Part shown: positions 42,253 to 64,000 of the stretch, piece after piece
Position numbering within the stretch: the stretch's first letter is position 1
How the letters are laid out: the number at the start of each line of letters is the position of its first letter
Assembly: GCF_000143415.4 (NCBI RefSeq)
Contig: NW_003314292.1
Coordinates: 250,825 to 314,824, forward strand
Direction of reading: 5' to 3'
DNA: 64,000 nucleotides
From: Selaginella moellendorffii
Taxonomy: Eukaryota > Plantae > Lycopodiophyta
The notes under the pieces: model-generated
Databases searched by the model: none
Seen by the model: only the letters and a program-made list of their open reading frames with translations
What the model was told of the DNA's origin: nothing
Translations under genes and position numbers: made by a program

Positions 42253-43052
42253 GTCGCCGGGGAGTTCACTCAGTCATTCATGAAATGTATAGTGAAAAAC
42301 TAAATTTAAAAATATTCTTTTTAATTTACTTGAGGGTTAGAGCTTTGCTCAACTACCTTTAACATAAGTATAAATCAATAATACTTTACCCTTGGATTCA
42401 GCTTGATTGGTGCTTGTAATGCTGAACTTGTAATGCTAAACTTGTAATGCTGGTCTTGTAATGCTGGTAGTGTCCAAGTACAACACGTAACAAGTTTCAG
42501 ATAGTGAAGACTGACTGGGATTGCCATGACCACTACAAAGTCAAGGTGGTCTTGCCAAAAGCTGGACAAATTGCAGTAATATGGTGAGACGCTGCATTAC
42601 GTTTCTCACCGGAACTAGTTGGACAATTCAAGCAACAAAATTCTCACAGCCATACAGTGCATATCGAATATCGCAATATTATTTAAAGTCCATGTATAAT
42701 CAACACGTTTTTCCAGTTCTAGCAAGTCAAATAAGCTTTGACACTCTATTACCTTTTCTCTCTCCCAGTGAAGATCATCGCTTTAATGGCTCTGCAGCGA
42801 ACGAACTTTCCACAAAAAAAAGCTTCTAGGGTCTCTGCTCACAAGAACAGAAAGTATACTCACTGCTTTAAATCAAAAGGAGGTTTAACATTCAAGTTCA
42901 AAGCTCATTGTGGAGCTTGAAGTTGTCATTCAACATTTGGGGTGGTTACAGCGAATAAACTGAAATTGAAAACGAAAACTACCAATGCTGCAAACACTTG
43001 CACAGCAAATTATTGTCAATCCTTTTATTTGGAAGATGTCCAAAGCCTAGCT

Positions 43053-43457
43053 TCAGTTCTCCACAGCGTTGGGATTTCCAGAGTCCCTGCAATTCGCACA
43101 ATAATTCAGTGTGGCCTCGCAATTGCCCCCATCGAATGCATGGCTTCCGCAGAGTCGACAAGGCTGGTTGTCATACACATGGAGAAACTGCTGCTTGAGA
43201 ACTGCCCCACTCACGGATGGATAGTTGCCATCGCACCTGAAAATTGCGGTGCAATGGCCAGAAACACGAGAAGTGAAGCCATTGTAGATTGTTCCGTCGG
43301 TGTAGCGAGAGATTGCTCGTCGGCAATCGGCCTGGTTGACGCGAGATCCACAGAGTCCAGAGCCATTGCAGTTGTCGTTCTTGGCACAGCTGGAGGAGCC
43401 AAGAAAGATCACAAGAAGAATAGCAAGAAGAGAGAAGAGCTTGAGAGAAGACTCCAT
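43053..43457 (-). CDS. Secreted cysteine-rich KP4 killer-toxin-like protein, copy 1
   Basis: Signal peptide, then NCNGSGLC...CRLCGS...EATLNYC, compared with KP4 NCRGSSQC...CRVCGS...QLTVNY; 10 Cys in the mature part; TATA box (ctatataaa on - strand) at ~43532-43540. Confidence 0.75.
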   Translation of the reverse strand: MESSLKLFSLLAILLVIFLGSSSCAKNDNCNGSGLCGSRVNQADCRRAISRYTDGTIYNGFTSRVSGHCTAIFRCDGNYPSVSGAVLKQQFLHVYDNQPCRLCGSHAFDGGNCEATLNYCANCRDSGNPNAVEN

Positions 43458-44696
43458 TCGACTATGTTAGAAAGAATGCTGTAATGAGGAGCTGAAGTAT
43501 GAAGAATGATTTTGCCAATGGAATGGTCTGGTTTATATAGGGGTATTTTGAAGACTGCGTCATACAGAGTTTACACGATCTCCTGATTTTTAAAGTATTT
43601 TCTAATGCAAGAATTTGTTTACAATTAGAACATGCTAGTTGAATAGACTCGCACCAGCATGGCACATTCGATTGTCCCCCCATTCCTGTATCAGGTACTT
43701 CGATTTTCTTACTTCCACACTGTTCGCTGTCCGTGAATTTTCGGAGTACACAATAAGCTGTCTACAGGCTCTTGAATTCCACCGATTTAAGGCTGAGCCA
43801 TCCTTTGCATTTAACAAGTTACGGGATTCATCTACAGATGATAATTTTGTTGTTTTTCTCGGCTGGTTCTTCTCCGGGTGCCAAAACGTGACCGCAGTAC
43901 TATGGAGTGCTCGAAGAAAACCTGGCAAATCCAAAAGCAATTTTAAGTACTTCACATCGCTTGGAATCTACAATCCCGCTTAAATCTTGTTAAATCTCAT
44001 CAGAATTTTACCAAGAAACAAGACAAGGCAAGCTTCATCGATCGCTCGCATAAACAGTTCGATAAGAAAAAGAAAGAAATCAAGAAACTCAAATAAGACT
44101 GTTTCCTCTAGCCTTTCTCGTTGTAATCTATCAGCTGAATTCGTGCCATGCGCCACCAGGTGGAGTTTTGGTGACAAGGACACAAAGAGCTATACGTGCT
44201 TCACTTCAGGCTGGAAGAACGCTCGAACTTGTCGTGGGTGTTCCTAGGAATACGTTTGTGAGTGTTTAGTAGAGCGTTTAGGGAGGATACCGGTAACGCT
44301 CGACAGTGTGTTTGGCCGAGACTAACCAATCGTCAAATCTCTCTCCTCTCTCTGTGTTTTCGTTTGCGCACAATTTTTTGCTCAAAAAATGTTATAACAA
44401 ATATGGATTCAGCTTCATTGGTGCGCCTGTATGGAGCATGTCAAACTTGTAATGCTGGTAGTTTCCAAGTACAACACGTAACAAGTTTCAGTTGACTACC
44501 AAGTCAAGGTGGTCTTGCCAAAAAGCTGGGCAAATTGCAGCAGTTAAATTATAATATGGTGAGACGCTGCATTACGTTTCTCACCGGAACTAGTTGGACA
44601 ATTCAAGCAACCGGGAGTCAAGTAAAACAGAAGTCAAAGTTTAATTGACTAGCTAGAACTTGAAAAAAGTGTTGTATGCACGGACTTGGAGCCACC

Positions 44697-44759
44697 TACG
44701 CCCGATCATTCCAGATAATGCTTGCATCCTCTGTATTACCGCGGCTGCTGGCACAGAGT
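44697..44759 (-). other. Nuclear insert of a plastid 16S rRNA fragment (NUPT, 63 bp)
   Basis: Reverse strand reads actctgtgccagcagccgcggtaatacagaggatgcaagcattatctggaatgatcgggcgta: the 515F region with the plastid/cyanobacterial-type ACAGAGGATGCAAGC. Confidence 0.9.
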
Positions 44760-45024
44760 GTCGATTGCGATATTTGATAAGTGAAGATCATCGCTCTAAT
44801 GGCTGTGCAGCGACGGTCTCCGCTCACGAAACAGAAAGTATACTCACTGCTTCAAATCAAAAGAAGTTTATCAATCAAGTTCAAAGCTCATTGTGGAGCT
44901 TGAAGTTGTCATTCAGCATTTGGGGGGTTACAGCGAATAAAAAGCAAACACTAACAACACTGCAAACACTTGCACAACAAATTATTGTCAATCCTTTTAT
45001 TTGAAACATGTCCAAAGCCTAGCT

Positions 45025-45429
45025 TCAGTTCTCCACAGCGTTGGGATTTCCAGAGTCCCTGCAATTCGCACAATAATTCAGTGTGGCCTCGCAATTGCCC
45101 CCGTCGAATGCATGGCTTCCGCAGAGTCGGCAAGGCTGGTTGTCATACACATGGAGAAACTGCTGCTTGAGAACTGCCCCACTCACGGATGGATAGTTGC
45201 CATCGCACCTGAAAATTGCGGTGCAATGGCCAGAAACACGAGAAGTGAAGCCATTGTAGATTGTTCCGTCGGTGTAGCGAGAGATTGCTCGCCGGCAATC
45301 GGCCTGGTTGACGCGAGATCCACAGAGTCCAGAGCCATTGCAGTTGTCGTTCTTGGCGCAGCTGGAGGAGCCAAGAAAGAGCACAAGAAGAATAGCAAGA
45401 AGAGAAAAGAGCTTGAGAGAAGACTCCAT
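45025..45429 (-). CDS. Secreted cysteine-rich KP4 killer-toxin-like protein, copy 2
   Basis: Same protein as copy 1 except an I->L change in the signal peptide; TATA box retained. Confidence 0.75.
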   Translation of the reverse strand: MESSLKLFSLLAILLVLFLGSSSCAKNDNCNGSGLCGSRVNQADCRRAISRYTDGTIYNGFTSRVSGHCTAIFRCDGNYPSVSGAVLKQQFLHVYDNQPCRLCGSHAFDGGNCEATLNYCANCRDSGNPNAVEN

Positions 45430-46202
45430 TCGACTATGTTAGAAAGAATGCTGTAATGAGGAGCTGAAGTATGAAGAATGATTTTGCCAATGGAATGGTC
45501 TGGTTTATATAGGGGTAATTTGAAGACTGCGTCATACAGTGTTTACACGATCTCTTGTTTGTTAAAGTATTTTCTAATGCAAGAACTTGTTTACAACTAG
45601 AACATGCTATTTGAATAGACTCGCACCAGCAGTGGGCTAGAGATCGTCACAGCTAGCACATTCGATTGTCCCCCCATTCCTGTATCAGGTACTTCGATTT
45701 TCTTACTTCCACACTGTTCGCTGTCCGTGAATTTTCGGAGTACACAATAAGCTGTCTACAGGCTCTTAAATTCCACCGATTTAATGCTGAGCCATCCTTT
45801 GCATTTAACAAGTTACGGGATTCATCTACAGACGATCGCTCTCGCATAAACAGTTCGATAAGAAAAAGAAAGAAATCAAGAAACTCAAATAAGATTGTTT
45901 CTTCTAGCCTTTCTACGTGCTTCATTTCAGGCTGGAAGAACGCTCGAACTTGCCGTGGGTGTTCCTAGGAATACGTTTGCGCACGCCAATTTTCTAGTGT
46001 TTTAGTAGAGCGTTTAGGGAGGATGCCGGTAATCTCTCTCCTTTCTCTCTGTGTTTTCGTTTACACACAATCTTTTGCTCAAAAAATGTGTTTCCAAGAA
46101 ACCGGGATTACGAAGCAGTCAAAGATAACCGGTAAAAGGTTAAAAGTAAAGAATATAAAAGGTGGTAGCCCTAGAACGCGTGGGAAAATTTTCTCTATCG
46201 CA

Positions 46203-47181
46203 TCAGTTATTGGCCAAGACCAAAAAGCCCAAGGACACGTACAAGAGGAACACCGGATAGATGGCCAGAGCCTTCCGGCTACCCGGCACAGCGGAGCTCA
46301 TGAAAGGATACACCGCCCAGGAGCTCCACGCCACCGTGACGAGCACCACCACGCTTCTAAACAGCTTGTTGTCTCGGACCATGCAAATCGCCGCTCCAAC
46401 AGCCAGCGGGAAGAGGCAGTAGCCCAGCACGCTCAAGCTCTGGAAGAAGATGATGCTGCCACCCTGCAAATCCATCGAGGGATCCATCACTCGGTCACTG
46501 GAGCTCGAAAACAATGGAGAGAACTTACCAGCAAGACTACGTTCACTGTGAGAACCACCGCTCCGGCCGAGAGAACCGCGAAGACGGTCGCGAAAACTTT
46601 GGCCTGGAACACGAGAGAAAAGATCACAAGATCATTTTGGATCGAGAGGAAAGAAACTGCGAAAATCTTACCCGATCCGCGGAGGCCGAGTAGGAGAGAA
46701 CGGTTGCGAGGAAGATGATGAAGAAGAATGGCCCCCAGAGATCCCAATCCTTCAGCGCCTTGCCAGCGTCCTTGCGGTATGGATTTGGAAACACCACATT
46801 CTTGAGGTTCTCAAACACCTGGTTGATATCGCGCTTGAGCGTCTCCCACACTGGCTCCGTGAGAGTGTCATAGCCGGGGCCGCCCCCAAATCCCGTCATC
46901 ATCGCTGGAGAGGTCTCGGAGGAAGAGGAGGCATCGAGATTGGCCGCTGGATATGACGGAGGAGGAGGAGGCGGAGGAGGAGGAGGAGGAGGAGCTCCTT
47001 TGGATTTCGCTGCCGATGCCACCGGCGTGACTGGAATTGTGGCGCGCGGCGGGCTGGGCGGCCTCCTGGAGCTGGAATCTACCGGCGCCGCGGGCTGGAC
47101 ACTTATCTGGAAGAGATTCTCGATCTCGTCGATGTCGGACTGCGACGACGCGTGGAGCGGGATCTTCTCGATGTCGGCCAT
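46203..47181 (-). CDS. Yip1-domain protein (YIPF6-like), 3 exons
   Basis: [11 protein letters not shown]; [14 protein letters not shown]; [12 protein letters not shown]; [20 protein letters not shown]; [13 protein letters not shown]. Confidence 0.93.
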
Positions 47182-61419: not shown

Positions 61420-62420
61420 ATGTACGGACTGATTTTGTCACAAACAACCTTAATTAAATGTCCTTAAGATTTATTATAATCCAGTGGGGAATGATCAAAA
61501 CATGTCACCAAACTGACAGCTCGGCCCAGAGTTTGTATAAGTGTCACTAGGCATCAGGCCTCAAATATTAATCATGTAGAGTCCCAACCAAGAAAGAAAC
61601 ATCACTGACAGATTTCCTCAACTGGCTACAAAAACCATCAGAAATCCCATGGTGAGGGCATTGAAGTGCAAGAATGTGCTGTAGCCCATTCCCCACATTA
61701 ACACCCTCTCACACAACAATGATTCAACTCAAGGTACTTGTATGGGGTGTTGCAAACCTCAAGACCTCTCTCAATGGAAAATCCAAATCCTAACTCAAAT
61801 TATAAGTTTTATCACACTTCCAAAAGATAATTTTTAAACATCTATGTTGTCATCCCTTTTATAAGTCTCAAATCCACTTGGATCCCAACCACTTGATTGT
61901 TAATCCCTTTGAATCATTAGAAAATTTTATATGCCACTTAAGCCACCTTGTGTCATGAATATGATTGTAGGTATTAAAGTTATTTATTGGCAAGTCTTTT
62001 AAGATATTTTTTTCTTATTACCATGATAGTAGGAGGTTAGTATTGTTAATTCTCTTGTTAGTCACTCTTTATTGAATTAAACTGTGTGATAAATATAAAG
62101 TAAAAACTCTTATATATTTTCTTATTGATCATATTTAGCTTAGTAGTTTTCTTTGCTCTGTTTTGTGTTAGTCAAGTGTCCAAATTCATAATTTAGTGCC
62201 ATTCTATATTTAGTAAATTTCGAGTTAGTTCTAAAGACTAATTCCTTATACTAATGGCTTGATAAGAACCCTTATATATTGAGTACTAGTCCCTCAATAT
62301 TGTTATGTAATAACTTACTATTTCTGTTAAACACTTTCACTATTATGTGATCTTAGTTTCAATCCCATTAACAAAATGTTTAGATTTATTAATGAAGCAT
62401 ATCTATGAAATGTAAAAAAT

Positions 62421-63989
62421 GTATGAAGTTTGGGCTTAGACCCAAGTTAGATACAAAAAAAATACACACCTAGCAAAGAGCTAAATAATACCTTAGGTTG
62501 GTTAGCCATACTCAATCTATCTATTATCCTTATTATACATTTGAAACCCCTATATAAAGCTTTTACTTTTGTCCTAAAAAATAATTTTTAGGACAAACTT
62601 GAAGACTTATTAAATATAGAATGACACTAAATTGTAAATTTGGTACCACTATGTTTAAGCATGTTAGCCATATCCTTACATTAGGCCACTAATATAGTTT
62701 TTGCTTAACCATACGACAAAATTTAACCTTTAGATACATGTGCCAAGGAAAACAAAGTAGGACCTAAGTTTTAGGGCCTTGGGCTATTTAATAAAGGAAT
62801 AGTGCTAAACTCCTGAGAGTATAGATAAAAAGTTAAGGAACATGAGTAGAGAGCAATATTGAAATAGTTTTAAAGAATCTAAAATGTCAACACTAAGATC
62901 TAGTAATTCAGCTTATGGTATAAAGTTAAAACTATATGCACTATATTTGGTATTAGAATATTTGTCTTAATGAGTACTATTTAACAAGAATGGGCAATTA
63001 AGCTAGTTGCATATGTAAAGATGAGAATAATGATTTAAGTGGGTATATATTTAGTTTTTGTGGCTTCATATTTCTCCTCGAGTATCAATTTTGGCTATAC
63101 CATTTTGTACTATATTGTATAAGCTTTCATTTTGGCTTATTTGATCAATCTTGAGATATACCATTTGTATGAGATACACCTAGGCTCGTGAGTGAAATGA
63201 GATATATTAGCAACTTAAAGTTATACTTTGAGTTGGTAAGATTGGTAATTACCATTAATTATTACCATAAAAATAAGCTTCCCTTGGTTTGCCATGAGTG
63301 GCAAACAGGCCAGTCTATGGCTATTTAGCATGATATTAGTAGTGATCCTTCCTAATGCATGATTATGAACAAGATTGTAGACATTTTTCTATTAATTTAA
63401 GTAGTTATTGTTGTAATTTTTTAAAACTTTTCTTCCACAATGGCAAAAGATCAGTATTGCTAAACCATTTATTAGTTTCCACTCAAGTCAGTTGAGAAAT
63501 TATTCATCACATGTTCATTTTACTTAATGAGTATAAAGACAAAAATTTTAAGTGCTTTAGAAAAACTCATTCTTTAGCTTGCACTTGCTATTGTTGTTAG
63601 TGTTATTGAGCCTAGTCCCTTAATATTTGCTAGATTATAATTTATTATTTGTTAGATACTCTCACTATCATTCCCCATGTGATATTTATAGAAAGTATCT
63701 AATGTTTTACTTAAATATATTTATGAATTTTAAAGAATGTCTTAAATACAATGATATTGTTTTCACATTCGAATTTATAATCTAACACCATTTCATATTT
63801 AGTAAGTTTTCAAGTATGTCCCAAAGACTATCTCCTAGGACTAAAGTAAAAGCCTATAGCAAATTTATGTATAATAGAGATAGTAAGTAGATTAGGCATG
63901 GCCAACTAGTCTAAGGTATTTTTTGGCTCTCTATTAAGTGTATCTATTTTTGTTTTGCATTTAACTTGGGTCTAAACCCAATTCCATAC
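62421..63989. mobile_element. Degenerate non-autonomous element with long (~210-bp) terminal inverted repeats (MULE/foldback-like)
   Basis: 62421 gtatgaagtttgggcttagacccaagttagatac... is the reverse complement of ...gcatttaacttgggtctaaacccaattccatac 63989; homology continues inward to ~62630/63780; AT-rich, CpG-depleted, no ORFs. Confidence 0.6.
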
Positions 63990-64000
63990 CATGCTAGCTA

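Follow-up and report, generated by a model that had tools for sequence, protein, structure and literature searches.

Tandem MU117-family genes with a predicted KP4-type fold in the lycophyte Selaginella moellendorffii: a fungal-type, putatively secreted protein of probable interkingdom origin

How did a lycophyte come to carry a tandem pair of nearly identical, intronless genes for a small, cysteine-rich protein that belongs to an otherwise fungal family, and what might such a protein do for its host? The pair lies in a stretch of 64,000 nucleotides (nt) of Selaginella moellendorffii DNA (contig NW_003314292.1, positions 250,825 to 314,824), which was analyzed as a whole and is referred to here as the window. 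An earlier note, made from the letters of the window, had taken the genes for a candidate horizontally acquired antifungal system of the KP4 killer-toxin type. Based on family assignment, structure prediction, phylogeny and transcript data, we favor a reading, with a probability of about 0.7, in which the genes encode a fungal-type MU117 protein with a KP4 fold that is probably secreted, came into the plant lineage by interkingdom transfer and, as the favored action, would work against fungi.

Family assignment and predicted fold

Profile comparison assigns the protein to MU117 (PF15474). The earlier note had instead linked it to KP4, whose Pfam family is Kp4 (PF09044). Both copies reach 72.1 bits with the MU117 profile, well above its curated cut-off of 30.4, at E = 7.7e-20; residues 29–123 align to profile positions 2–105 of 105, and all 18 aligned relatives match the same family. 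The fungal members are likewise encoded by single-exon genes and consist, like the Selaginella protein, of a single domain of ~105 amino acids (aa) after a signal peptide-like N-terminus. The ten cysteines of the mature part (C30, C36, C45, C69, C75, C100, C103, C113, C120 and C123) all align with those of Mortierellomycota proteins, and together with a C-terminal NYC..C.DSGNPN motif they are conserved in the closest sequences from Mortierellomycota and Umbelopsis; across the alignment C45, C69 and C75 are invariant, with C30, C36 and C103 nearly so. An eleventh cysteine, C24, is located in what would be the c-region of the signal peptide and shows no conservation among relatives. What distinguishes the Selaginella genes from the fungal ones is their vascular-plant host, their amplification as cassettes and their very high expression.

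No match to Kp4 was found in the Selaginella proteins at E ≤ 10, and faint, sub-threshold Kp4 matches occurred in four of the 18 relatives (best E = 0.015). A sequence search of the PDB with the Selaginella protein returned chance-level matches that did not reach KP4, and a search with the family profile did not find the KP4 toxin of Ustilago maydis virus (UmV-KP4, 1kpt) at E ≤ 10. The KP4 sequence motifs quoted in the earlier note thus correspond, at the level of these searches, to no statistically supported relationship.

The fold, on the other hand, agrees with the earlier proposal. In an AlphaFold2 model (a predicted, not a solved structure) for which the alignment of the family served as input, the predicted local distance difference test (pLDDT) score exceeds 86 over residues 40–120, while confidence is low over the N-terminal stretch. 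The model shows a predicted KP4-type α/β sandwich, in which an antiparallel sheet lies against two helices and the elements follow each other in the order helix-strand-strand-helix-strand-strand (H42–50, E62–66, E69–75, H84–96, E104–108 and E113–119). UmV-KP4 was the best solved match in Foldseek (1kpt_A, E = 1.4e-3, probability 1.0, 23% identity), with an alignment that covers 104 of 105 columns and spans the full length of the 105-aa mature toxin; both are small proteins of the secreted type. It also ranked first when 48,161 chains were compared with a second, independent aligner, VIA (Z 8.5, root-mean-square deviation 2.6 Å over 91 residues), followed by Zt-KP4 (6.7), the LDL lectin (6.2), a DUF26 domain (6.1), the Y3 lectin (5.9), a further DUF26 domain (5.1) and Gnk2 (4.7), after which seventh match Z drops from 4.7 to 2.9. 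Neighbors in the ESM Atlas form mixed Kp4/MU117 clusters. KP4 itself also has ten cysteines, and the ten in the mature Selaginella part agree in number with five disulfide bonds of the KP4 kind.

The second-best structural match, Zt-KP4-1/ECP2 (Hce2; PDB 8acx), represents secreted, cysteine-rich effectors with the KP4 fold from ascomycetes that are plant pathogens, but shares only 10–17% identity with the Selaginella protein and belongs to Pfam Hce2 and to Group 2 of the superfamily. DUF26/Gnk2 (PF01657, 'Stress-antifung'; ginkbilobin-2 and the PDLP/CRK ectodomains) is extracellular and cysteine-rich and has the same fold class (Z 4.7–6.1; template modeling (TM) scores of 0.50–0.53 among the Atlas structure matches), yet it gives no Pfam match with the Selaginella protein and its structural scores lie below that of KP4. 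DUF26 forms a large family of plants that is inherited vertically and has six cysteines per domain. In a published structural survey, proteins with the Pfam Kp4 domain make up Group 1 of the KP4 superfamily, with the moss KP4s in one of its clusters, whereas the PF15474 cluster is found in Group 3 (PMC12382754). As modeled, the protein is thus predicted to be within the KP4 structural superfamily and outside the Kp4 sequence family, with which it shares no significant sequence similarity.

The gene pair, its expression and its conservation

The coordinates of the pair and its parts are collected in Table 1. Both genes proved to be intronless open reading frames (ORFs) of 134 codons, exactly as first described. 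The window is identical, in reversed orientation, to scaffold GL377596.1 of the S. moellendorffii v1.0 assembly GCA_000143415.2 at ~290 kb, in agreement with a lycophyte host, and copy A is identical to a gene annotated there. In public annotation the genes already figure as hypothetical MU117-domain proteins. Copy B lies 1972 bp from copy A on the same strand; tblastn detected just these two MU117 copies within the window, and direct-repeat families D1–D5 and D7, spaced by 1721–1994 bp, accompany a tandem period of ~1.97 kb. The pair is a local tandem duplicate within a small multigene family of S. moellendorffii.

Table 1. Positions in the window of the MU117 gene pair and associated features
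Feature	Position	Strand	Details
MU117 gene copy A	43053..43457	-	Coding sequence of 134 aa plus stop, single exon; ORF and Pfam match
MU117 gene copy B	45025..45429	-	Coding sequence of 134 aa plus stop, single exon; I17L relative to copy A
TATATAAA box (TATA) of copy A	43532..43539	-	40–47 nt upstream of the last RNA-seq read end, 43492
TATATAAA box of copy B	45504..45511	-	Alignment column shared with the copy A box
Tandem duplication unit A	42577..44551	-	~1.97 kb cassette with copy A; from direct repeats and alignment
Tandem duplication unit B	44552..46030	-	With copy B; upstream part shortened by deletions
Putative signal peptide of copy A	43383..43457	-	By inspection; codons 1–25: MESSLK, hydrophobic LFSLLAILLVIFLG, SSSC/A
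Copy A transcript	42916..43492	-	~577 nt, unspliced; depth up to 918 in run X23
Copy B transcript	44905..45464	-	~560 nt, unspliced; depth up to 2232 in run X23

The two coding sequences (CDS) differ at 6 of 405 nt, five of the differences being silent and the sixth an I/L replacement at position 17 in the N-terminal hydrophobic stretch. The mature parts with their ten cysteines are therefore identical, as had been noted before, while the pre-proteins are not. Within the mature part, all three nucleotide differences are silent. The flanks, in contrast, carry indels and 3.5–8% mismatches: the 3′ untranslated regions differ by 7.8% with two indels, and the stretch 121–400 nt upstream by 3.5% with one 22-nt indel. 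The 120 nt immediately before the ATG are identical at 118 positions and align without gaps, TATATAAA included. By eye, the N-terminus has the layout of a signal peptide, with a charged n-region (MESSLK), a hydrophobic core of 14 residues and a c-region of small residues (SSSC/A), so that the mature part would start at about residue 25/26 and comprise ~105–109 aa. A non-conserved hydrophobic N-terminus precedes the conserved domain in 18 of 18 aligned relatives.

Transcription was assessed with two raw stranded RNA sequencing (RNA-seq) runs of the species, mapped at ≥97% identity on positions 42300–46300 (4001 letters), 12% of run X23 having been read. Both transcripts are sharply bounded, with zero depth between the genes and on either side of copy A, and molecules from copy B begin at 44905/44908 and end at 45461/45464. 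The TATA boxes named in the earlier note stand 40–47 nt upstream of the last read ends of the transcripts (Table 1). Not a single splice joint was present in the reads over either gene, confirming that both are intronless, and the RNA comes from the minus strand, because the first mates all lie on the plus strand. Counting the family members that map at ≥97%, the level reached ~590 and ~265 reads per kilobase per million (RPKM) in the two runs, and the depth was ~100 times that over the start of the neighboring Yip1 gene (Yip1 ~1%). Each gene, intronless and with a TATA promoter of its own, is very highly transcribed into a separate, strand-correct and unspliced RNA that reaches hundreds of RPKM. 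The stretch is present in contigs of runs from five separate studies, and it is RNA-seq from a sixth that shows the transcription. Among the variant letters that RNA reads carry within the CDS, 17 of 19 fall at third codon positions, the sole replacements being L35F and L17I (window 45327 and 45381). Many expressed variants (e.g. at 43173, 43170 and 45268) are absent from the five assembly copies compared, namely the window's two and three at other loci; these unmatched variants must come from additional expressed paralogues or from another strain.

Beyond the window, several loci bear out the amplification suggested earlier. Scaffolds GL377596.1 and GL377586.1 both carry an annotation of exactly this protein, and an identical protein is encoded at four places, comprising the window's pair, a solo copy with two alleles (98.5–99.8% identical) that adjoins a DEAD-box helicase, and a paralogous pair that adjoins a DNA glycosylase gene. 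The genes sit on scaffolds of 1.8–2.1 Mb, between an intron-containing Yip1 gene and a class-3 lipase (Lipase_3). Four of five DNA versions encode one and the same protein, and these four differ at nine sites, all nine silent and none a replacement (P ~2e-6 under random placement). The ratio of nonsynonymous to synonymous substitution rates (dN/dS) between copies A and B is 0.059, and among paralogous loci the flanks are 84–95% identical compared with 95–100% for the CDS. Cumulatively, these figures show that purifying selection acts strongly on the coding sequence, whose flanks meanwhile decay. A diverged member on GL377586.1 (L003:4962-5366), next to a Pur_DNA_glyco gene, has seven amino acid changes, four of them in the signal peptide, and a dN/dS of ~0.19–0.29 against the other copies; its locus is paralogous, not allelic, to the window's pair. 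Two truncated MU117 fragments were also seen, each next to an intact copy: a 3′ end of the CDS (L001:1608-1718, 87% identity) and a 5′ half (L003:1300-1543, 84% identity). Such fragments, together with flanks that are 84–95% identical, indicate that the 1.5–2 kb cassette probably undergoes birth-and-death turnover.

The surroundings of the pair had been described as an island of pseudogenes. The region from 35 to 46 kb is indeed AT-rich and without long ORFs, but none of the ten longest ORFs in the 35–42.6 kb flank has a Pfam match and hence no pseudogene was identified around the pair. On the other side, at 46203–47181 on the minus strand, lies the neighboring Yip1-domain gene, which has introns and a first exon that encodes 12 prolines in a row. 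The last part of the window (62001–64000) is very AT-rich, with a GC content of 0.287 against 0.49 overall.

Distribution, phylogeny and origin

The family was traced with HMMER, in an exhaustive scan that covered 1.84 billion representatives of clusters and yielded only 64 relatives, and by a second search over 5.8 billion proteins, the libraries being clustered or word-indexed. Named plant matches come only from the lycophytes Selaginella and Diphasiastrum and from the ferns Ceratopteris (three genes) and Adiantum (two species), whose homologues sit on large chromosomes or scaffolds (chromosomes of 46–178 Mb among the other plants). The three Ceratopteris richardii genes on chromosome 21 bear nearby numbers (21G014800, 21G015900 and 21G016100), which suggests a local cluster as in Selaginella. 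All remaining named matches are fungal, bar one nematode entry, and come from Mortierellomycota (at least 10 genera, essentially every genus), Umbelopsis and many Ascomycota, with proteins of Pezizomycetes and lichen fungi also among them; neither search returned a named match from algae, bryophytes, seed plants or other eukaryote groups. Homologues checked were all single-exon. In the literature searched, we found nothing on MU117 in plants or on MU117 or KP4 in lycophytes and ferns, the gene lists of one large survey of horizontal gene transfer in land plants lying outside that search.

The closest non-plant proteins are those of Mortierellomycota and Umbelopsis, at 50–57% identity, compared with 31–42% for ascomycete members, Schizosaccharomyces Mug117 included, which would put the plant sequences inside fungal diversity. 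In a maximum-likelihood tree of 67 domains and ~100 alignment columns, the plant sequences and some unnamed metagenome sequences group together (support 89/79). Their sister group is formed by Mortierellomycota and Umbelopsis (88/87), and both groups together (84/63) stand among ascomycete lineages. When sampling was denser and ascomycetes served as root, the Mortierellomycota still formed a clade (89/91), beside which the plant lineages are a polytomy. The unnamed metagenome clade stems from short ENA contigs on which no informative neighbor genes were found. Selaginella is joined with the ferns (97/92), apart from Diphasiastrum, in line with identities of 81% to Ceratopteris and 56% to Diphasiastrum. 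However, lycophyte monophyly was not rejected in an approximately unbiased (AU) test (p = 0.078, the group having been chosen after the tree was seen), so plant-to-plant transfer is not claimed here, and old paralogy is an equally good explanation of the Selaginella-fern grouping. A further observation concerns the nematode Mesorhabditis belari, in which a 5.96-Mb contig of GCA_958450365.1 holds a partial homologue of 100 aa (L010:6001-7703, P0119) near a Sulfotransfer_2 gene; its range of 1703 bp implies introns, and its sequence falls with the Mortierellomycota clade. This copy could be another interkingdom transfer or a contamination.

From this distribution it appears that the gene was probably transferred from, or shared with, Mortierella-like fungi into early vascular plants. 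Lycophytes and ferns would likely have received the family through an interkingdom transfer in which early-diverging fungi of the Mortierellomycota/Mucoromycota type took part, most probably in the direction from fungus to plant, since the wider range of the family is fungal. Because ferns and a second lycophyte carry MU117, any transfer is probably old, and it is likely old enough for base composition to have turned host-like. The horizontal acquisition put forward in the earlier note hence stays plausible for a fungal-type family, but not as an event specific to Selaginella.

Several other histories have to be set against this one. Fungal contamination or an assembly artefact might be suspected from intronless genes of a fungal-type family in AT-rich, gene-poor surroundings, but the megabase scaffolds with intron-containing Yip1 and Lipase_3 genes on the flanks, the several loci with one allelic pair, the recurrence of the stretch in independent studies together with its transcripts, and the homologues on chromosomes of other plants exclude it for practical purposes. 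Membership in the true Kp4 family, through an independent acquisition or an event shared with mosses, would explain why UmV-KP4 is the best structural match, with ten cysteines and the same mature length of ~105 aa, and why faint Kp4 matches appear in a few relatives; it is contradicted by the Pfam test, in which MU117 scores 72 bits where Kp4 gives nothing and the profile misses 1kpt, by the placement of moss KP4s and PF15474 in different groups (PMC12382754) and by nearest relatives in Mortierellomycota, not ascomycetes, and we hold it to be very improbable. Vertical descent of an old eukaryotic family, lost outside fungi and non-seed vascular plants, calls for no transfer at all, and it fits plant sequences nested in no sampled fungal clade, a host-like composition (CDS GC 0.51 against 0.49 for the window) and the occurrence of MU117 in lycophytes as well as ferns. 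Many independent losses would be needed, though, to account for the lack of any named match from algae, bryophytes, seed plants or other eukaryotes among so many proteins, and this makes it an improbable account.

The direction and number of transfers leave more room for debate. A reverse transfer, from a plant to an ancestor of Mortierellomycota and Umbelopsis, or repeated transfer, with separate acquisitions by ferns, Selaginella and Diphasiastrum or passage between plants, would agree with the unresolved grade of plant lineages beside a single Mortierellomycota clade under the ascomycete root, with the closeness of Selaginella to ferns and with the nematode entry; as the wider family is fungal and includes many Ascomycota, fungi are the likelier source, and since lycophyte monophyly survives the AU test and paralogy with differential loss explains the same pattern, we consider such histories unlikely. 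Along the same lines, 81% identity to Pteridaceae ferns compared with 56% to Diphasiastrum, and a nematode copy placed with Mortierellomycota, might point to MU117 as a mobile gene repeatedly exchanged among Mortierella-like root-associated fungi, their fern and lycophyte hosts and soil animals, possibly also from plant to plant. We regard this as an unlikely, speculative extension; if true, soil organisms that live in contact would have a KP4-fold toxin cassette in common. An old transfer, most probably of fungal origin, remains the account we prefer.

Proposed function and significance

How the protein acts can be approached through its structural relatives. We propose, with less assurance than for its origin, that the plant exports the mature protein to its apoplast, where it would be a compact ligand, locked by disulfides and resistant to proteases, and would act at the outside or surface of other cells. 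The favored action would be inhibition of fungal hyphal growth, either by interference with Ca2+ uptake or by binding of cell-surface glycans. An antifungal role is suggested by analogy with UmV-KP4, which inhibits the growth of fungi, and with Zt-KP4-1, which does so as well (PMC12382754), by the Gnk2-type domain, described as characteristic of plant antifungal proteins (PMC12382754), and by amplification through birth and death; we advance it tentatively, at somewhat less than even odds.

Alternatively, the protein might be a lectin that is secreted and binds glycans, or an endogenous signal acting on Ca2+-dependent tip growth in the plant itself. Moss KP4 is reported to change Ca2+ gradients in the cells of mosses (PMC12382754, citing Guan et al. 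2023). Of the seven structural neighbors, three bind carbohydrate (LDL lectin 4nds, Y3 5v6i and mannose-bound Gnk2 4xre), and very high expression in two samples would fit a constitutive housekeeping or structural role. Amplification with birth-and-death turnover, however, is more typical of defense genes, and Gnk2 is itself of an antifungal plant protein type, so that lectin and antifungal activities do not exclude each other. We see an endogenous or lectin role as a serious, though less likely, alternative.

The favored reading as a whole, of an interkingdom transfer that brought an antifungal MU117 protein into these plants, must be held against a number of adverse points. On the structural side, Foldseek gave borderline scores (E = 1.4e-3; TM 0.49 by query, 0.59 by target), lectins use the KP4-type fold as well (4nds, 5v6i, 4xre), and any transfer of function from KP4 rests on the fold alone, there being no significant sequence match. 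Membership in MU117 says nothing about activity: no MU117 protein with a tested activity was found in the literature searched, and the name-giving member, Schizosaccharomyces pombe Mug117, is known only as meiotically up-regulated. The putative cleavable N-terminal signal peptide was read by eye. As for the phylogeny, the trees are short (~100 columns) and the plants are sister to, not nested in, the Mortierellomycota clade; their own clade is not firmly supported (89/79) and dissolves into a polytomy with denser sampling, for which reason the direction and number of transfers are not shown.

Keeping these points in mind, the case parallels the transfer of KP4 to mosses, in which likewise a fungal-type gene resides in a non-seed plant (PMC12382754, PMC11228847), but involves a different sequence family, different plant lineages (lycophytes and ferns instead of mosses) and different nearest fungi (Mortierellomycota instead of ascomycetes; PMC11228847). 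Fungal KP4 genes are known to have been taken up by mosses, which put them to use in the development of their cells; the locus described here places a second, sequence-unrelated branch of the KP4 fold superfamily, MU117, in lycophytes and ferns. In Selaginella the gene is amplified, ranks with the more abundant transcripts of two samples and hardly varies at the protein level. If antifungal, a small, disulfide-locked protein that is naturally expressed by a plant would also be of practical interest. Selaginella and Ceratopteris offer tractable systems for asking what the widespread fungal MU117 family does, and whether early vascular plants may have been armed with a toxin from the Mucoromycota/Mortierellomycota-type fungi with which they have long cohabited.

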